Positions 43,108-59,972 of a DNA stretch of 64,000 nt are shown here, one piece after another. The notes beneath the pieces are model-generated. The model ran no database searches, had not been told where the DNA came from, and saw only the letters and a list, made by a program, of their open reading frames with translations. The DNA lies in sequence record MG592671.1; one strand, 5' to 3'. The stretch's first letter is position 1; each line of letters starts with the position of its first letter. A program made the position numbers and the translations under genes.

Positions 43108-43719
43108 TACTGATAGTGCTTGGAGTTAAATCCCAGGCATTACTAGAACTGGTTCTAATCACCAGTAGAGGCTCGAGACTCTAAAACGTTAGCAGCTCCT
43201 CCTACTGTGAGGCTTAAGGTGAAACTGAAAAGTCTCTCAGTAAGATACAGGACGTAGTAAAAGTACGAAGTGTAACAGAATGCGCAGTCTGATCAATAAG
43301 AGAGGTTGCTATAGCTGCGGACTGGTATAACTGGTATATTCTAGTAATAGATATATTAGATCAGTTTAGTGGCAACGTGGGTTCGACTCCCATGTGAGAT
43401 CACACTAAGTATTAGAGGAGATACGTCGCTCCTAGTGTTGACGGCATAACTTACTTGCCAGAGCTGAATAAATGTCATGTAGTACCGCTGTCCGAAAGGA
43501 CAGCACATTAACAGAATTTTATAAATATCATTGTACTTAATTAAAAGAATTTAAAACAAGGAAATTGTCGATGCACGTATCAGTTACTAAATCTAGTTCG
43601 TTTAGTAAGGGAACTAAATGGTTCTCCTGGATACTAGTGCCTGAAAATTGTCGACTGATAGCATAACCTCCTTTTTGTTTTGCGCTATTAAGCCGATGAT
43701 TGTTTCATCGGCTTATTTT
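43108..43719 (+). ncRNA. Large (~610 nt) structured non-coding region with a T-arm, ending in a terminator
   Basis: No ORF in the track; more than 12 helices including 10-bp long-range pairs, a GAAA tetraloop and GGGTTCGACTCCC. Confidence 0.7.
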
Positions 43720-44961: not shown

Positions 44962-45038
44962 ATATTTTGTATTTACATCTAGTAATCTATGCGCCGATAA
45001 TTTATTATGTGCTTGTATGCATTGAAGATGTGGAGTAA
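44958..45038 (+). CDS. 26-aa hydrophobic microprotein
   Basis: ATGA coupling. Confidence 0.45.
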   Translation: MNILYLHLVIYAPIIYYVLVCIEDVE

Positions 45039-45044
45039 TTTTAC

Positions 45045-45236
45045 ATGATTGATATTATTGTTGATCACTTAACATCTCAACTTCCACTTATGCTCATAAT
45101 GATACCATTTGCGTTATTGCTTGGTTGGGTCATGAAAGAATTTGATGATGTTGAGGGAGAACATTACGAATCACTTGAACGTGATTACGAAATGTTAGCG
45201 TATTTGGATAAAAATAAGCCAAAAGATGGCAAGTAA
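45045..45236 (+). CDS. Small membrane protein
   Basis: One TM; SD GGAG. Confidence 0.6.
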   Translation: MIDIIVDHLTSQLPLMLIMIPFALLLGWVMKEFDDVEGEHYESLERDYEMLAYLDKNKPKDGK

Positions 45237-45441
45237 TTTTATCAAAGTCTGGTGTGAATATAATATCAGCGGATCGTTTGGTGGAAACAACAACGAAGAA
45301 GTGTTAGAGTACAACGGTGATTCAGAAGTTGACGATATTGATCAACTAGTTCTTGATTTTATGAAGCGCAAAACAAACCTAACAGAAGAAGAGCTAGAAG
45401 ATCTTCATGGTTGGGAATGGCTTGTAATGGAAGAACTATAA
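45226..45441 (+). CDS. hypothetical protein
   Basis: ORF. Confidence 0.65.
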   Translation: MASNFIKVWCEYNISGSFGGNNNEEVLEYNGDSEVDDIDQLVLDFMKRKTNLTEEELEDLHGWEWLVMEEL

Positions 45442-45450
45442 TAAAAAATT

Positions 45451-45542
45451 GGCGGGTTGGTAGAGTTTGGCTTATTGCACCTGACTTGAAATCAGGCGAA
45501 CCTTAAACGGTTCCGAGGGTTCGAATCCCTCACCCGCTTCCA
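45451..45542 (+). tRNA. tRNA-Ser(UGA)
   Basis: Class II cloverleaf, loop CTTGAAA, CCA; discriminator U. Confidence 0.9.
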
Positions 45543-45544
45543 AT

Positions 45545-45620
45545 GCAGGGATAGCTCAGTAGGTAGAGCACGTGATTGAAAATCACGGTCGCGCCAGTTC
45601 AATTCTGGCTCCTTGCACCA
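45545..45620 (+). tRNA. tRNA-Phe(GAA)
   Basis: 76 nt, loop TTGAAAA, CCA. Confidence 0.92.
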
Positions 45621-45723
45621 ACAGTGCGTACTCCTCTAATACACCTCGGTAATATTACGTTTACGCCTTCTTAATTTGTTAGTCTGTGATGGAAAAGAAA
45701 AATAATCTCAAGGAGATAAAACA

Positions 45724-45930
45724 ATGGCTAAATCCTATGTACAGATCAAGTACCTTACAGTAAGCGAACTTGATAAACTAAATGACAAGCGTTTAGTGGA
45801 AGTGCTAAAAGTTGCTCGTAAACACTTCAAGATTCTTGAAGCTGGTGAATTTACTGTTGACGAAGTTGCGTCAGCTGAAACATACCACAACCAAGTCAAA
45901 GCTATTAGCGAGACTCGTAGTAACGTATAG
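45724..45930 (+). CDS. hypothetical protein
   Basis: SD AAGGAG. Confidence 0.7.
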   Translation: MAKSYVQIKYLTVSELDKLNDKRLVEVLKVARKHFKILEAGEFTVDEVASAETYHNQVKAISETRSNV

Positions 45931-45942
45931 TAATCTACGTAC

Positions 45943-46031
45943 AGGGAATGTTCTTGTCAGCGGTCTCCAAAACCGTCGAGAATAAACAGACTTGTGGTGC
46001 TCTAGGGGTTCGATTCCTCCATTCCCTGCCA
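45943..46031 (+). tRNA. Atypical tRNA-Trp(CCA) lacking a normal D-arm
   Basis: Acceptor AGGGAAT/ATTCCCT-G-CCA, loop CTCCAAA, T-loop TTCGATT; only ~10 nt where the D-arm should be. Confidence 0.65.
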
Positions 46032-46047
46032 AATTTTATAAGATATT

Positions 46048-46269
46048 ATGAAAAGTTATAAAAGTAATTGCTTATTTGAAGCAATAAAACTACGATTTAA
46101 AATACCTAACAGTTCATTTAAAATGAAGTGGACAGAACAAAGTTGGATATTCCCTCATTGTTATGTTGAGACCGAAACGCATAAGATTGCTTTTGTTGGA
46201 TTATATTCCGATGAACCACCTTTAGCCCATTTTTGGTACATAGGTAGAATAAAAAGTAGATTGAAATAA
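46048..46269 (+). CDS. hypothetical protein
   Basis: ORF between tRNAs. Confidence 0.6.
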   Translation: MKSYKSNCLFEAIKLRFKIPNSSFKMKWTEQSWIFPHCYVETETHKIAFVGLYSDEPPLAHFWYIGRIKSRLK

Positions 46270-46272
46270 TTC

Positions 46273-46362
46273 GGAGGCATGGCAGAGCGGCTTATCGCGC
46301 ACCCCTGCTAAGGGTGTAGACCTTAATAGGTCTCGTTGGTTCAAATCCAACTGCCTCCGCCA
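46273..46362 (+). tRNA. tRNA-Ser(GCU)
   Basis: Class II, loop CTGCTAA, G73-CCA. Confidence 0.93.
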
Positions 46363-46364
46363 AT

Positions 46365-46453
46365 AGAGAGATGACTGAGTGGCTTAAGGTACTCGCTTGG
46401 AAAGCGAGAGGAGGCATAGCTTCCCGCAGGTTCGAATCCTGTTCTCTCTGCCA
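46365..46453 (+). tRNA. tRNA-Ser(GGA)
   Basis: Class II, loop TTGGAAA, G73-CCA. Confidence 0.93.
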
Positions 46454-46478
46454 ATATATTTTTAAACAAGGACTTAAT

Positions 46479-46724
46479 ATGTTCGTAGTAATTTTTGGTC
46501 AACCAGGTTGCCCATTCTGCACAAAAGCAGTAGATCTAGCTGAAAAATATAAAACAGAGCGCGATGATTTCAACTATCGTTATGTTGATATCAAAGCAGA
46601 AGGCATTAGCAAAGCTGATCTTTCAAAAACAGTAGGTGAAGAAGTGACCACAGTGCCACAAATCTTCATTGATCAAACACCAATTGGTGGTTACACGCAA
46701 TTTGAAGCATACAATTTAGACTAG
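46479..46724 (+). CDS. grxA: Glutaredoxin 1
   Basis: GQPGCPFC, TVPQIF, IGGY; start corrected to ATG46479. Confidence 0.93.
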   Translation: MFVVIFGQPGCPFCTKAVDLAEKYKTERDDFNYRYVDIKAEGISKADLSKTVGEEVTTVPQIFIDQTPIGGYTQFEAYNLD

Positions 46725-46738
46725 GAGTAAAACAGCAA

Positions 46739-47194
46739 GTGGAACACGTCATTACGTTCCTTCAGGATTACCTGTCCTGGATCATGAACGGTGTATCGAT
46801 GGTGGCAGCATATTGTCTTTCTAATCAGAGAGCAGTCGTTGGTCGATACTTAGGTGCAACAGGTGCATCTCTTTTTATATTATACGGCGTGGTGACAAAT
46901 CAGCCTGCTTTTGTGGTAGCTGATATCATCTTCCTGTACATTTACATTAGTGCAGTTTTGAAGTTCAATAAGAAACGAGATTCTTATCGTGAAAAAGCAG
47001 CGGATGATGAAGAAACTATTGCTCAAATGCGAAAGATCATCAAACGTGCTAATACAATTGAATTAGAAATTCTTGAAACACGTATTGGTAAGCAAACGAA
47101 AAAGAAACTTGAACTCCGTAAATCATTACAGAAGCAACTTTATATTCTGTTGAAGATTGGCGAAAAGATTGAAAATGACATCGAGGACGAGTAA
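46739..47194 (+). CDS. Membrane protein with a C-terminal coiled coil
   Basis: Three short TM segments; SD AGGAG. Confidence 0.65.
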   Translation: MEHVITFLQDYLSWIMNGVSMVAAYCLSNQRAVVGRYLGATGASLFILYGVVTNQPAFVVADIIFLYIYISAVLKFNKKRDSYREKAADDEETIAQMRKIIKRANTIELEILETRIGKQTKKKLELRKSLQKQLYILLKIGEKIENDIEDE

Positions 47195-47208
47195 AATCGT
47201 CCTTTTTT
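47184..47208 (+). terminator. Terminator
   Basis: AGGACGA-GTAAAA-TCGTCCTTTTTT. Confidence 0.75.
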
Positions 47209-47223
47209 GTGACTAAAATTTAT

Positions 47224-47342
47224 GGGCTCATGGCGAAGCGGGATCGCGATTTAGTTTAGTACCTAGATCTAGGAGTACGCATCCGCAACACTCTTAACCG
47301 GCATGATCGGTGACGTTGGTTCGAATCCAACTGAGTCCACTA
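47224..47342 (+). ncRNA. tRNA-like RNA with G3.U70/A73 and a replaced anticodon arm
   Basis: GGGCTCA/TGAGTCC-A-CTA, D-arm and T-arm present. Confidence 0.65.
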
Positions 47343-47349
47343 TTAACTT

Positions 47350-47568
47350 GTCGAGCTGGAAAACAAAGCCTCTGAAACTGTAAAGCCTCCACAAGGTTAA
47401 CAGATTGTAGAAGATTCGTTATACTAAGAGAATCAGGGGAGATAATGTTTGGTCAGAGTAACAAATAGATATGGAATATTAGAGGAAAAGCTAGTAGACA
47501 GTGGAACTACTTGCAGAACTCTTTTAAGACGTTGAAACTACGGGGTTCGATTCCTCGTCTCGGCACAA
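47350..47568 (+). ncRNA. 219-nt RNA with tRNA-like termini
   Basis: GTCGAG/CTCGGC-A-CAA; T-arm CGGGG-TTCGATT-CCTCG. Confidence 0.55.
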
Positions 47569-47572
47569 AAAA

Positions 47573-47664
47573 GGAATACAATCGAAAAAGGGCTTGTAGT
47601 AGGCACTGAGACCCAGAAGCCCTGAAATACCCATTCAGATCGTCTGTAAGCAGTGCTGTATTCC
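47573..47664 (+). ncRNA. 92-nt pseudoknotted RNA element
   Basis: GGAATACA/TGTATTCC, AGGGCTT/AAGCCCT, GCACTG/CAGTGC. Confidence 0.55.
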
Positions 47665-47674
47665 TATTAACTAT

Positions 47675-47969
47675 GCCCCTGATGTTCAATACTTGAATAA
47701 GGGAATCCCTGTAAGGCTGGAGTCACCCGGAGAGACAGATTACGATACTATATCACTCACTAATACACTGGATCCAGATCGCGTGTTCGTGACTGTGACG
47801 GTAGTATAGTACGTGTCGTAAAGAGATGATTCCTGTGATACGGTATAAGCTGGTGTAGAACTCGCTCGTGAAGGTAGACTGAAAGCGGACCAAGTGTGAC
47901 TACTTGGCAAAATCCAGGAGTATGTTGAGACTATGAGTTGGGTGGTTCGATTCCACGCCAGGGGCAACA
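47675..47969 (+). ncRNA. ~295-nt RNA with tRNA-like termini
   Basis: GCCCCTG/CAGGGGC-A, T-arm GTGG-TTCGATT-CCAC, internal helices. Confidence 0.65.
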
Positions 47970-48032
47970 ATTCAGGATAACGCAAACGCATTATCCTCAT
48001 TAATATGTGTTAATATAATACAACAACATTAT

Positions 48033-48103
48033 CCCCGTTCCCTAACGTGACACTACAGAAATAATAGAGTTGCTGGACGTTCGAATCGTCAAGCGGGGTC
48101 TAA
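48033..48103 (+). pseudogene. Degenerate tRNA-like element
   Basis: CCCCGTT/AGCGGGG and GACG-TTCGAAT-CGTC only. Confidence 0.45.
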
Positions 48104-48131
48104 TCATCCTTAATATCAAAGGTACTTCATA

Positions 48132-48869
48132 ATGGATAATATCCTTCTGTTCGCTGGACACAACACGTCAAAACGTGGCGGCATGGCCGATTTCGTTGCT
48201 GCATTTAGTTCTGTTTATGCAGCACAAAAGTTTATTGAAAACGAGAACACCCAACACACCCTGCTTGACACACTCCCAAGTTTACAGTGGGCACATTTGT
48301 ATAACACAAATGAAGGTCGTATTGTGCAGAAAGGCAAGATCGAGATCTGGGGTCGTGAAGATATTGGAAATGAAGATGATGAAGAGACTAAGTTCACATG
48401 GTCACCGTGTGATGATGAAAAGGATCTTCAACCTCTAATGGTTCAAGCAGCTAACGACAATAGTGCTCGTGAAAAGGCCGAAGAAGAACGTATTGCTAAA
48501 GAAGAAGCAAAACTTGCTGCTGAACAGGCTATTGAAGATTCGGTTGCTAATACTATCATTCGCGTAGTTCCCTTTGATCTAGGCGTTATTGACTCTGTAG
48601 TTGATGAAATTGAAGTTCAATTAGAGTTTGCATTTAATCTTGAAGCAATGAAGCAAGAAGGTGAAATCACCAATCGACACGTAAAAGTATTGACTATTTC
48701 ATTTTCAGATGAAGATAAAGCTCTACTTGAGAGTATGGGTGGTCCTAGTGCGCCAGGTCATTGGGTAAGTAAAGCTCAGCAGCATTTTGATGACGAAATG
48801 ATCATGGCATTTTTTGAAAACGAAGTTCTAACCGAGGACGAAGTTAGCTCAGTAGCAGAGGTAGCTTAA
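48132..48869 (+). CDS. Acidic hypothetical protein
   Basis: 245-aa ORF. Confidence 0.8.
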   Translation: MDNILLFAGHNTSKRGGMADFVAAFSSVYAAQKFIENENTQHTLLDTLPSLQWAHLYNTNEGRIVQKGKIEIWGREDIGNEDDEETKFTWSPCDDEKDLQPLMVQAANDNSAREKAEEERIAKEEAKLAAEQAIEDSVANTIIRVVPFDLGVIDSVVDEIEVQLEFAFNLEAMKQEGEITNRHVKVLTISFSDEDKALLESMGGPSAPGHWVSKAQQHFDDEMIMAFFENEVLTEDEVSSVAEVA

Positions 48870-49237
48870 TGGCTGACTTTACTTATGAAGATGCTATAGC
48901 ATCACCTGAGGGCACTACCTTTTGGGTATGTGCTCACTCTCGTAGGGATGTCACTAAGAAAGCACAGCGTTATCAAGAACCACAGCAAGCAGTTGTGGTA
49001 AGTGACGGTGCAGTAATTCGTGGATCGAATTTTCTTGTCCTTCTTAATAACAAGGGCAATATGACCAAGAAGAAAGTCATTCGCACATCTACTTATATCT
49101 ATGATGATAAGGATGAGTGTGCAGCTAGATTCAATGCGTTAAGTATTGAGATTCGAGATCGCTATATGGATTACTCTCGATACGTGGCAGAACAAGCTAC
49201 AGCGCTGAGCAAGCTAATTGACAAATACAGCAAATAA
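48869..49237 (+). CDS. hypothetical protein
   Basis: TAATG coupling. Confidence 0.75.
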   Translation: MADFTYEDAIASPEGTTFWVCAHSRRDVTKKAQRYQEPQQAVVVSDGAVIRGSNFLVLLNNKGNMTKKKVIRTSTYIYDDKDECAARFNALSIEIRDRYMDYSRYVAEQATALSKLIDKYSK

Positions 49238-49460
49238 CGGGATATACTGAAAAGGGCATCTCCGAAGCTATCATCCTAGGAAATGTGGCGATCATTGTTG
49301 TCGGTTATTAGGTATATTCAAGTCTACTCCGAAAGCACGGGCTGACGCGGGAGCGTTGGGCGAAGTAGAGGTTCAATTCCTCTAGCACACTTGATAACAA
49401 ATCGGGAGAGTGTGTTCTGGGTGAAATATTAGGGTGCGAGTCCCTTAAGTAGACGCCCGT
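49237..49460 (+). ncRNA. 224-nt structured RNA with a permuted tRNA-like domain
   Basis: T-arm followed by GCACACT/AGTGTGT hairpin; closed by GTCTACT/AGTAGAC and ACGGG/CCCGT. Confidence 0.6.
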
Positions 49461-52540: not shown

Positions 52541-52763
52541 TGAATACTTTGAATACCTGCATGATCTACAAAAGCAGGGATATATGATATACGATAATTC
52601 TCGTATGGTTCAGGACTTTATCTCAATTGAAAAAATTGATGGAGTATGGAGGTATTTTTATCACGAAGACACTGAAGGTGAAATAGACTGTGATATGGAT
52701 GGATGCTTTACTGTATACAAGGATGTCACTGCTGAAGTAAAGCAATCAACTACAATGTTATAA
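52530..52763 (+). CDS. hypothetical protein
   Basis: ORF. Confidence 0.6.
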   Translation: MTNDEYFEYLHDLQKQGYMIYDNSRMVQDFISIEKIDGVWRYFYHEDTEGEIDCDMDGCFTVYKDVTAEVKQSTTML

Positions 52764-52797
52764 TATAGTAATAATAAAATATTAGTAGAGAAATATT

Positions 52798-55431: not shown

Positions 55432-55464
55432 TGTAATAAAGTCATAAAAATATGTTATAACATA
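55432..55464 (+). promoter_or_regulatory. Phage promoter variant, palindromic
   Basis: TGTAATA-N14-TGTTATAAC; TATGTTATAACATA palindrome. Confidence 0.6.
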
Positions 55465-55519
55465 TAGTAAGCAGACAGGCTGCTAACTAAAACTTATAAC
55501 ATATTCAAAAGAGGCTACT

Positions 55520-56571: not shown

Positions 56572-56665
56572 ACACATGACAACAGAGTTATTTGGTTCAA
56601 ATCCAGGCTTGGCGGGTAAGACTGCATTGAAGCTTATTATTGGTATAAAGCACTACGTTATGTGT
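56572..56665 (+). ncRNA. 94-nt circularly permuted tRNA mimic (YrlA-like topology)
   Basis: Terminal stem ACACATGAC/GTTATGTGT; the T-arm precedes the D-arm. Confidence 0.55.
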
Positions 56666-57606: not shown

Positions 57607-57612
57607 ACTAAT

Positions 57613-57785
57613 TTAAGCAGCAACTCGTGGTAGGGGAATGTAGACCCGCCTTGGGGAATCTAGGAGAGCTCAGAGGATACTTGCGGCACAGTTGAAGAGT
57701 GTTCCCTAATTCACGGGACGTGTAGCCTTAATGGCGAAGTGTAGACTGTTACTGGTTCAAGTCCAGTCCATCGAACGCTGCTTAA
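57613..57785 (+). ncRNA. tRNA-Leu-like RNA, copy 1 (expanded anticodon domain, extended acceptor)
   Basis: TTAAGCAGC/GCTGCTTAA; T-arm ACTGG-TTCAAGT-CCAGT. Confidence 0.6.
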
Positions 57786-57789
57786 TAAA

Positions 57790-57950
57790 ATGAAATACAG
57801 CAACTCGTTGTGGTGAAACTGGTAGACGCGCCTGGTTGGTACCTGCGTTGACTACCCCTGTAAAAAAAGGGGTCATAGACAATGGGACGCCCGGGATCCT
57901 TGTGAAAGGGGAGTGCAGGTTCGAGTCCTGTCTTCGAACGCTGTGTTCAT
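57790..57950 (+). ncRNA. tRNA-Leu-like RNA, copy 2
   Basis: D-arm GTGGTGAAACTGGTAGACGCG, V-arm, T-arm GCAGG-TTCGAGT-CCTGT; shares terminal motifs with copy 1. Confidence 0.65.
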
Positions 57951-57953
57951 ACT

Positions 57954-58063
57954 TGAGAAGATCATAAACAAAATTTGGTACGCGCTTCAGTTGTGAGGTT
58001 CAATTCCTCGAGGTTCTAGGTGACCAACGTCGACGTAGAGGTTCGAATCCTCCTTTTCAACCA
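57954..58063 (+). ncRNA. 110-nt CCA-ending tRNA-like RNA with two T-loops
   Basis: TGAGAAG/CTTTTCA-A-CCA. Confidence 0.6.
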
Positions 58064-58077
58064 AAAAATAATAGGAT

Positions 58078-58500
58078 ATGAGTATGAATCTTAATGAAAT
58101 CGAATTAGTCCCTAAAACTAAAACATTTTATGTTCGTTATACATCCAATCAGACTGGCGTGTATAAAATTGTTGGTACTTCTGAAGAAACATTTAAAAAT
58201 ATTCTTGTTGAACAGCACACAAAAATGCATAGAGCTAAACGATACGTTGATGAGTATCAAACAGAAGTTAACACTGCTCAACGCAAAATGAATAAACTTC
58301 GTGATGATTGTGATTTCACACATTACTACAATCAAGCACAGGATGATCGTAGTAACTATGAATACTACCTGGATCAACAAATGCCAAAATTCAAAAAGGC
58401 AGAAAAAGAATTCAATTTCTATTTTGATCAGATTAATCCAGATGCTGGCGAGTATATTACGCTGATGATGTGTTATGACGCAGAGTGGGTTTTTGAATGA
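58078..58500 (+). CDS. Coiled-coil hypothetical protein
   Basis: SD AGGA. Confidence 0.7.
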   Translation: MSMNLNEIELVPKTKTFYVRYTSNQTGVYKIVGTSEETFKNILVEQHTKMHRAKRYVDEYQTEVNTAQRKMNKLRDDCDFTHYYNQAQDDRSNYEYYLDQQMPKFKKAEKEFNFYFDQINPDAGEYITLMMCYDAEWVFE

Positions 58501-58577: not shown

Positions 58578-58647
58578 TGTTACGCAATCGTAATAAAATG
58601 TTATAATAATACATAAGCAGTTAGCAACAAGAGCTGCTTAGTAAATT
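58578..58647 (+). promoter_or_regulatory. Promoter plus 5' leader hairpin (duplicated at 59775-59828)
   Basis: TGTTACG-N14-TGTTATAAT; ATAAGCAGTTAGCAAC. Confidence 0.7.
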
Positions 58648-58723
58648 GGGCCTTTAGCTCAGTGGTTAGAGCAGTCGACTCATAATCGATTGGTCCGGGG
58701 TTCAAGTCCCTGAAGGCCCACCA
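58648..58723 (+). tRNA. tRNA-Ile2(CAU)
   Basis: 76 nt, loop CTCATAA; body resembles enterobacterial ileX rather than Met tRNAs. Confidence 0.85.
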
Positions 58724-59534: not shown

Positions 59535-59787
59535 AACTATTGGTGCTTTAGTTGAACTACACGATGATGTATTTGACTTAGAGGGCTATAAAGATTATTA
59601 TACACACCTTGTTCATTTGCGTGGTGTGGTATTTGAAGTTCAAAATTGTGATGGCGCGCATACGCACGTTATTGATAGAAATAGTGGCGTAGAATTTGGC
59701 CTACATTCAGAGAATTTCAAAACTATTTCAAAAGAAAAGAAAAAAGCTTACGATAAAGCACAACGCTTCGTAAATAAAATGTTATAA
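59515..59787 (+). CDS. hypothetical protein
   Basis: ORF. Confidence 0.65.
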   Translation: MMTQAHKTIGALVELHDDVFDLEGYKDYYTHLVHLRGVVFEVQNCDGAHTHVIDRNSGVEFGLHSENFKTISKEKKKAYDKAQRFVNKML

Positions 59788-59828
59788 TTAATTATAAGCA
59801 GTTAGCAACGTAGACTGCTTGATAAATT

Positions 59829-59916
59829 GGAGGTATTGGGGAGTAGACAAACCCAAGGGACTGTAAATCCCTCGCTTACGAGAGTAGCTACGGTGGTGCA
59901 AATCCATCTACCTCCA
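59829..59916 (+). tRNA. tRNA-Tyr(GUA)
   Basis: Loop CTGTAAA, long V-arm; T-loop TGCAAAT; 3' CAA rather than CCA. Confidence 0.85.
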
Positions 59917-59972
59917 CAAACTGTTGTCATATAAAATGTTATAATAACTATATACTAATATAGGGATTTATA

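Follow-up and report, generated by a model that had tools for sequence, protein, structure and literature searches.

An oversize tRNA-like gene in a Vibrio jumbo phage: a candidate diverged tRNA-Ser paralogue with predicted alanine identity

The 64,000-nucleotide (nt) stretch of DNA analysed here, hereafter the window, is part of the genome of Vibrio phage 2.275.O._10N.286.54.E11 (MG592671.1; 348,911 base pairs (bp); subtracting 124,000 from a record position gives the window position), a jumbo (giant) phage whose host is Vibrio cyclitrophicus. It carries a transfer RNA (tRNA)-like gene of 116 nt on the plus strand at window positions 47224–47339. We read this element, with a probability of about one half, as a diverged and probably non-decoding paralogue of a serine tRNA that would have arisen from tRNA gene turnover, is probably matured and is predicted to be a substrate of alanyl-tRNA synthetase (AlaRS). 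Most likely it represents a paralogue that is disabled or drifting in function, and not a dedicated alanine-carrier system or one akin to transfer-messenger RNA (tmRNA). The existence of the element is already recorded in GenBank, where 171224–171339 is annotated as "tRNA-OTHER, anticodon TTA", whereas its nature is not. Coordinates below refer to the window unless otherwise indicated, and the parts of the element are as follows.

47224–47230, plus strand: 5′ strand of the acceptor stem, GGGCUCA (pair probability 0.81–1.0)
47233–47247, plus strand: D arm GCGA-AGCGGGA-UCGC, with a perfect 4-bp stem, G18 G19 and a following G
47248–47269, plus strand: H1, anticodon-arm-like hairpin of 7 bp (GAUUUAG/CUAGAUC) with the 8-nt loop UUUAGUAC (pair probability 0.95–0.99, z = −2.8)
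47270–47296, plus strand: H2, extra 27-nt hairpin of 7 bp (UAGGAGU/ACUCUUA) plus an inner 2-bp GC/GC (pair probability 0.88–0.99, z = −2.6)
47297–47311, plus strand: H3, variable arm of serine type, 5 bp, ACCGG-CAUGA-UCGGU
47315–47331, plus strand: T arm GUUGG-UUCGAAU-CCAAC (78% identity over 40 nt with the 3′ part of tRNA-Ser(GCU))
47332–47339, plus strand: 3′ strand of the acceptor stem, UGAGUCC (47332–47338), and discriminator A73 (47339)
47340–47342, plus strand: CTA at the place of an encoded CCA

The 7-bp acceptor stem, a D arm with GG and a T arm with a TTCRANN loop are all found in the element. The acceptor GGGCTCA/TGAGTCC with its G3·U70 pair (G at 47226 with T at 47336), the discriminator A and the CTA that follows it, all of which had been proposed in a first-pass annotation of the DNA, were recovered. 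The Rfam tRNA model (RF00005; gathering score 29 bits) scored the element at 37.8 bits (E = 2.3e-4 over 64 kilobases (kb)), with an alignment that covered the acceptor, D and T arms and left a 62-nt local gap where the 17-nt anticodon arm is expected. The gene was missed by ARAGORN in default mode, and its 116 nt lie outside the tRNA range of about 70–95 nt. A strict descriptor of the tRNA body, comprising a perfect 7-bp acceptor, U8, a D arm with GG and a perfect T arm, returned 14 bodies in 91 kb of the phage genome, namely 12 normal tRNAs, this element and a second one of 133 nt, and none in 20 shuffles.

The minimum-free-energy structure of the element is a cloverleaf in which three adjoining hairpins separate the D arm from the T arm (z = −2.3 to −2.5), and pair probabilities within this insert are 0.9–0.99. 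H1 starts directly after the D stem, that is, at the position of the anticodon arm, with 7 bp and an 8-nt loop in place of the standard 5-bp stem, 7-nt loop, U33 and purine 37. H3 resembles the variable arms found in all three tRNA-Ser genes of the phage, and subtracting the 27 nt of H2 leaves 89 nt, the size of these phage serine tRNAs. As H1 occupies the anticodon-arm site and H3 is the variable arm, the net surplus is H2, some 27–29 nt (116 versus 87 nt for tRNA-Ser(GCU)). The first-pass annotation had drawn a two-hairpin insert instead of an anticodon: its second hairpin is favoured and corresponds to H2, but the first, CCTAG-AT-CTAGG, cannot form as drawn because its loop would have only 2 nt, and H1 takes its place. 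A canonical arm is indeed lacking, but "instead of an anticodon" overstated the case, as a hairpin whose 8-nt loop is U-rich occupies the position. No second copy of H2 or of the insert was found within the window, and the inserts of the 116- and 133-nt genes bear no real similarity to each other, so that a repeated mobile insert was rejected.

Among the 12 tRNAs of the window that were compared, the nearest is tRNA-Ser(GCU) at 46273–46359, with 19 of 26 positions identical in the 5′ part and 22 of 28 in the 3′ part. It is also the best match for the D and T arms, the latter off by a single loop base, as had been noticed earlier. Both genes share the acceptor/D/T architecture, the D loop AGCGG, C11–G24, G2–C71 and a 5-bp variable arm at the same place. 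The element differs in its length (116 versus 87 nt), the extra 27-nt hairpin, a 7-bp/8-nt hairpin versus a 5-bp/7-nt anticodon arm, A73 versus G73, G3·U70 versus A3–U70, C4–G69 versus G4–C69, and the absence of an encoded CCA. The comparison thereby shows the two genes to be paralogues. According to the scheme we propose, tRNA-Ser(GCU) of the phage would be the parent, and its acceptor would have been altered by compensated substitutions to yield G3·U70 and A73. Its anticodon arm would have become the 7-bp hairpin with an 8-nt loop, and the 27-nt hairpin would have been added between that hairpin and the variable arm. Given that the anticodon arm is not canonical, the product would probably take no part in normal decoding.

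Alanine identity in bacteria is determined by A73, G2–C71, G3·U70, G20 and G4–C69 (PMC9976931). Four of these five determinants are present in the element (A73, G2–C71, G3·U70 and a G at the D-loop position matching G20), and the fifth, G4–C69, a minor one, is replaced by C4–G69. The G3·U70 pair is unique to the element among about 20 phage tRNA genes checked, and no tRNA-Ala was found in the phage. As to the serine determinants, G73 and R4–Y69 (PMC9976931) have been lost in favour of A73 and C4–G69, while C11–G24, G2–C71 and the large variable region are kept. Known AlaRS substrates, that is, tRNA-Ala and acceptor helices with G3·U70, have G1–C72, G2–C71, G3·U70, A73 and the G at position 20 in common with the element, which differs from them in C4–G69, in its class II body and in having no GGC/UGC anticodon arm. 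Introduction of G3·U70 into a class II tRNA-Tyr is reported to lead to alanine acceptance (PMC9976931). The product of the element is predicted to be accepted by the AlaRS of the host, which would then charge it.

The missing CCA fits the other tRNAs of the phage, and at this 3′ end the RNA contigs carry genomic sequence only. A CTA tail is also found on the canonical tRNA-Gly(TCC) and tRNA-Cys(GCA) and on a Val-like gene, tRNA-Tyr and tRNA-Ile end in CAA and tRNA-Leu in CCG, and the phage encodes a tRNA nucleotidyltransferase (CCA-adding enzyme; NVP2275O_348). With such tails and such an enzyme, the lack of CCA is normal for this genome and no argument against maturation, which is plausible from the sequence. 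The 3′ end would be trimmed and CCA added, as needed for the other phage tRNAs without CCA, and a 21-nt leader would be removed by RNase P, which would recognise the tRNA-like fold.

These features can also be read as those of a functional RNA that is charged with alanine through G3·U70 and A73 and used outside normal decoding, whether as a donor for an aminoacyl-transferase, as a decoy or sponge for a tRNA-binding host factor or nuclease, or as a tmRNA-like rescuer. We consider this tentative and rather unlikely. It would account for the four alanine determinants and the sole G3·U70 among the phage tRNAs (PMC9976931), and it is consistent with an intact tRNA body, a well-folded insert, a candidate promoter of its own with transcription, and the CCA-adding enzyme of the phage. 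Against it stand the absence of tmRNA features and of any identified partner gene nearby, the lack of a homologue in phage records, IMG/VR and the JGI metagenomes and of the element itself in relatives, and an abundance that, roughly estimated, resembles that of the surrounding transcript and not that of a stable tRNA. The G3·U70 pair could moreover be incidental, as it lies a single transition away from A3–U70 of the paralogue.

The resemblance to tmRNA suggested in the first-pass annotation did not hold up. The tRNA-like domain of tmRNA (SsrA) does share with the element a G3·U70 acceptor, a T arm and a middle part that is not an anticodon arm. The element, however, has an intact D stem, only 116 nt in total, nested hairpins without pseudoknots and no resume codon. 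Neither ARAGORN nor Rfam returned a tmRNA match, and the tmRNA mode of ARAGORN yielded nothing at lowered stringency. The sole short frame in the element, of six codons ending in UAA, does not finish like a degradation tag, and no plausible tag frame is present. Since every defining feature except G3·U70 fails, tmRNA was rejected.

Among described RNAs, the nearest counterparts of the element are the stable RNAs C and D of phage T4, species 1 (rnaC, 139 nt) and species 2 (rnaD, 119 nt), which likewise lie in a phage tRNA cluster and exceed tRNA size; GenBank classes them simply as small stable RNAs and assigns no function. The T4 rnaC ends with the canonical T arm CCGGG-UUCGAAU-CCCGG and then a short terminal stem, and its middle contains long hairpins. 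The element has no sequence similarity to either of them, and it possesses a whole tRNA body, whereas neither a 7-bp acceptor nor a D arm is clear in rnaC. Bacterial Y RNAs (YrlA), some of them phage-encoded, join a tRNA-like module with a T arm and D-loop contacts to other helices (PMC4201824). The ends of YrlA form the Ro-binding stem and its tRNA-like part is internal, in contrast to the element, whose ends form the acceptor stem. The Rfam YrlA model gave a single weak match in the region, on normal tRNAs, and no Ro60 gene was seen near the element.

Several observations weigh against decay or drift as the whole explanation. All helices of the tRNA body are perfect, the nucleotides for tertiary contacts are present (U8, G18 G19, G15/C48 and the T-loop UUCGAAU), and the insert folds better than 97–99% of dinucleotide shuffles. 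The seven stem differences from tRNA-Ser(GCU) have produced zero mismatches: pairs 4:69 and 5:68 are altered on both sides, A3–U70 has become G3·U70, and two imperfect D-stem pairs of tRNA-Ser(GCU) are standard in the element. As no mismatch occurs among these differences, selection must have acted on the helices during the greater part of the period since divergence. The changes at 3:70, at 73 and in the D loop form, as judged from the determinants, a coherent switch from serine to alanine identity. With only one sequence available for the element, neutrality cannot be shown. Finally, the phage has a second intact oversize tRNA, the unannotated His-like gene of 133 nt at genome 211223–211355 (L004:23223–23355). 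This gene, the only tRNA-His candidate of the phage, has G-1, C73, an encoded CCA, acceptor stem, D arm and T arm all perfect, GUG in an 8-nt anticodon loop and a variable region of 59–64 nt, and scores 38.2 bits with the Rfam tRNA model. It hints that a large insert flanking the anticodon arm could be accommodated, or could even have a use. Functional readings are kept alive by this sibling together with the intact tRNA body, the compensated stem changes and the coherence of the identity switch.

One such reading is that the element and the 133-nt gene represent a small class of deliberately oversize tRNAs, in which hairpins beside an enlarged anticodon loop confer a new property. We regard it as doubtful; if true, that property might be to resist or titrate host defences that cleave tRNAs, and the element might serve to carry alanine, charged yet withheld from the ribosome. 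Adjoining the His-like gene is an unannotated tRNA-Leu-like element of 135 nt (L004:22988–23122; genome 210988–211122) whose acceptor has 6 bp, whose anticodon position is taken by a short hairpin and whose long arm measures about 60 nt (fold z = −2.7). Other phage tRNA arrays, 371 kb in total, yielded about 170 strict tRNA bodies, of which a single distinct element was longer than 92 nt. This 107-nt tRNA-like (L022 and L030, minus strand) belongs to an uncultured phage and has perfect acceptor, D and T arms, a G-CTA tail and a long hairpin, GGATGAATC...GAATTCATCC, at the anticodon-arm site.

That the element is a diverged paralogue left by tRNA gene turnover is consistent with the tRNA debris found in the same genome, part of which directly follows the element:

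47541–47565, plus strand: decayed 3′ half of a tRNA-His-like gene, T arm CGGGG-TTCGATT-CCTCG, then TCTCGGC-A (alignment with tRNA-His of KVP40-like phages)
47941–47965, plus strand: second tRNA relic, T arm GGTGG-TTCGATT-CCACG, then CCAGGGG-C (90% over 32 nt with tRNA-Met of T4-like coliphages)
48033–48099, plus strand: mini tRNA-like of 67 nt with a perfect 7-bp acceptor, CCCCGTT/AGCGGGG, and a 4-bp T arm (an X3 contig ends at 48100)

The mini tRNA-like has no clear D or anticodon arm, and its discriminator T followed by CTA equals the tail of tRNA-Gly and tRNA-Cys. A further non-coding block at 57607–58083, between a CYTH-domain gene and NVP2275O_319, holds two tandem decayed copies of a tRNA-Leu-like sequence, both of which start with CAGCAACTCGT and end with TCGAACGCTG. 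From these relics and this block it follows that tRNA genes have been gained, duplicated and lost in this genome, and such rapid gain, duplication and decay would be the origin of the element. The block also contains two T-arm pieces, at 57994 and 58037.

The RNA and small-RNA data, from Vibrio cyclitrophicus under infection (runs X1–X8), were represented as contigs, from which presence and contig ends can be read. The element is present in six RNA runs of two studies, in contigs colinear with the genome, and its surroundings comprise the following transcription features:

47169–47197, plus strand: sigma-70-like promoter candidate, TTGAAA, 17 nt, TAAAAT (consensus scan, 10 of 12 matches)
47183–47210, plus strand: terminator-like hairpin and T run of the upstream NVP2275O_302, with the promoter −10 in its loop (X1 and X2 contigs break here)
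47203–47223, plus strand: putative 5′ leader, 21 nt (start of the X2 contig)
47340–48122, plus strand: co-transcribed non-coding stretch without annotated gene or convincing open reading frame (X2 contig 47203–48122 and X3 contig 47334–48100)
47573–47664, plus strand: conserved pseudoknotted RNA motif M (core 47585–47657)

The X2 contig of 920 nt starts about 6 nt past the −10 element, and we infer 47203 as the transcription start. In the RNA data the element is the first part of a non-coding transcript of about 0.9 kb (47203–48122) that also contains the tRNA relics and motif M; neither an annotated gene nor a convincing open reading frame was found across 47340–48131. The X3 contig over 46503–47337 has a mean depth of 105, the adjoining one over 47334–48100 a depth of 390, and the one with the Ser, Phe and Ser tRNA genes a depth of 545. 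These rough, contig-level values suggest for the element an abundance close to that of the surrounding transcript and below that of canonical tRNAs, with no tRNA-like pile-up. The second of these contigs starts with the tail of an Illumina small-RNA 5′ adapter and five unexplained letters, ACCCC, and then matches from 47334, within the 3′ acceptor strand and 5 nt short of A73. This break could reflect a real 5′ end, a stop of reverse transcription at the folded element, or a barcode.

Motif M measures about 75–100 nt and comprises, in order, GAAAAA, a helix P1 (GGGYTT/AARCCC) around an invariant UGUAGUA, an optional hairpin, the invariant AAUACCCAUUNAGAUCG and a 3′ strand that pairs with the P1 loop to form the pseudoknot helix P2. 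Further copies were found at L011:1238–1325, L012:1188–1275 and L013:588–680 and in L014, L015 and L016–L053, the carriers being KVP40-like Vibrio phages, DSS3_MAL1, Va1, phiKT1024 and 38 IMG/VR contigs. Inside tRNA arrays, the motif typically lies 17–27 nt past one tRNA and 20–45 nt ahead of the next. Both helices covary, with compensatory variants in P1, and the mean P2 pairing of 5.46 compares with 3.58 ± 0.16 after permutation, a value of 5.46 being reached in 0 of 2000 permutations. No family of Rfam 15 matched the motif, which is widespread in phage tRNA arrays and may prove the more valuable lead. The uncultured phage with the 107-nt tRNA-like also carries it.

The position of the element ahead of this motif allows for its use as a processing or stabilising module, in which the fold would act as a signal for RNase P or 3′ processing, or as a protective 5′ structure, for downstream RNAs including motif M, in parallel to tRNA punctuation or MALAT1-mascRNA. 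Such a role would agree with the element being first in the 47203–48122 transcript, with the adapter-tagged X3 break at 47334 beside its 3′ end, and with the usual place of the motif 17–27 nt after a tRNA, whose processing presumably frees it. Here, however, the motif lies 230 nt downstream, behind the decayed tRNA-His piece that would do this job, the insert and the alanine identity are left unexplained, and processing sites are only weakly supported by contig ends. We therefore find this role unlikely.

The anticodon assignments of the gene finders conflict, as GenBank (tRNAscan-SE) gives TTA, and ARAGORN, when introns are permitted, reads Leu(TAG) interrupted by a 31-nt intron. H1 might be taken as the anticodon arm of an unusual decoder with an 8-nt loop that inserts alanine or another amino acid at Leu CUN (UAG), at a Thr codon (AGU), at a four-base codon or, following the GenBank call, at UAA (UUA). 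H1 sits exactly at the anticodon-arm position, a possible triplet in it is preceded by U and followed by A, both programs assign an anticodon, and the His-like sibling has a loop of equal size around GUG. Anticodon loops of 8 nt are functional in frameshift suppressors and in the yeast mitochondrial tRNA-Thr(UAG). With these tRNAs the element shares an 8-nt loop that contains UAG preceded by U, and it differs from them in the 7-bp stem and the extra hairpin. We judge such decoding quite improbable, considering that the two programs disagree on the triplet, that the Rfam model bypasses the whole arm, that the loop has 10 nt under canonical numbering, and that alanine at a Leu or Thr codon would be mistranslation. 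To our knowledge, the variable region of decoding tRNAs never contains a second hairpin. Ochre suppression would be harmful and is unlikely because TAA terminates 25 of the 34 neighbouring genes, which are normal under the standard code; an ochre suppressor or a recoded genome was rejected on these grounds.

The ARAGORN call corresponds to a tRNA-Leu(UAG) with a 31-nt intron at 37/38 (47261–47291), whose removal by protein-based cutting and joining would leave an 86-nt class II tRNA with A73. The class II body, A73 and the leucine anticodon make a coherent set, genes of RNA-repair type lie nearby (an RlaP-family nucleotidyltransferase and a CYTH protein), ARAGORN places the inserts of three other tRNA-likes of the phage at the same spot, and three of these four inserts start with ACCT. 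Yet intron mode produced 39 such calls in 462 kb, of which the majority are plainly artefacts, and because of this high artefact rate its output was dismissed as evidence. The spliced product would have a U·U mismatch in the anticodon stem, U37 and a two-base spacer between the D and anticodon stems, and its G3·U70 would mischarge a leucine tRNA. An insert of 31 nt is far below the size of a group I intron, and no group I intron, known ribozyme or riboswitch was matched by Rfam in 45000–49000. Every RNA contig is unspliced, and no splice joint was seen, although contigs cannot show absence. Altogether, an intron here appears highly improbable.

By sequence comparison the element is lineage-specific, in line with the diverged-paralogue reading. 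Searches with megablast and blastn for a homologue of the element or its insert across 50,697 phage records returned only the record of the phage itself, and no exact 22-mer of the element occurred in IMG/VR or in JGI metagenomes. The flanking proteins likewise found no match besides their own record in IMG/VR and JGI or, with tblastn, in the phage records. Relatives were reached via protein clusters only and are metagenomic contigs with flanking proteins 45–78% identical. The syntenic sites in these contigs, downstream of the ORF302 homologue and upstream of the ORF303 homologue, are occupied by ordinary promoters and genes; neither a tRNA nor a tRNA-like element was seen there. A close relative (about 97–99.5% identical) occurs at low depth in run X9, a plant metagenome, with contigs on 45926–46133, 47680–47906 and 48615–48857 and none over the element.

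Phage tRNA genes are now studied for the takeover of translation and for escape from host nucleases that cut tRNAs, and this phage is a published model for such work (Yang et al. 2021, cited in PMC12482277). The element could be a snapshot of the death or identity change of a phage tRNA gene, or a charged RNA with a non-decoding job. Public RNA data for the phage already exist, from which this choice could be settled at little cost.

Other tRNA-related features were noticed in the genome. An unannotated tRNA-like gene that ARAGORN missed lies at 45942–46031, between NVP2275O_299 and _300, with an acceptor of 8–9 bp, almost no D arm, a long variable region, an encoded CCA and the anticodon-type loop CUCCAAA (CCA, Trp); it scored 37.4 bits with the Rfam tRNA-Sec model, under the threshold of 47. 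ARAGORN also gave a marginal tRNA-Val(AAC) at L004:1306–1378 (genome 189306–189378; Rfam 28.4 bits, just below threshold), whose acceptor CTTCCGT/ACGGAAC is nearly that of tRNA-Glu (ACGGAAG) and which has a CTA tail and looks like a drifting duplicate. Three isolated, good T-arm-like motifs are intergenic, at 43377–43393 (GTGGG-TTCGACT-CCCAT), 49367–49383 (AGAGG-TTCAATT-CCTCT) and 56591–56607 (TTTGG-TTCAAAT-CCAGG); they have no convincing acceptor partner and look like tRNA fragments. A promoter motif of the AAAATGTTATAAT type is repeated at 55446–55474, 58592–58649, 59773–59830, 52746–52781 and 59927–59962, and at tRNA-Met and tRNA-Tyr it is accompanied by a conserved hairpin leader (81% identity over 58 nt). 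The same motif, TGTTATAA, is also found ahead of genes in the metagenomic relatives L005, L007 and L008.

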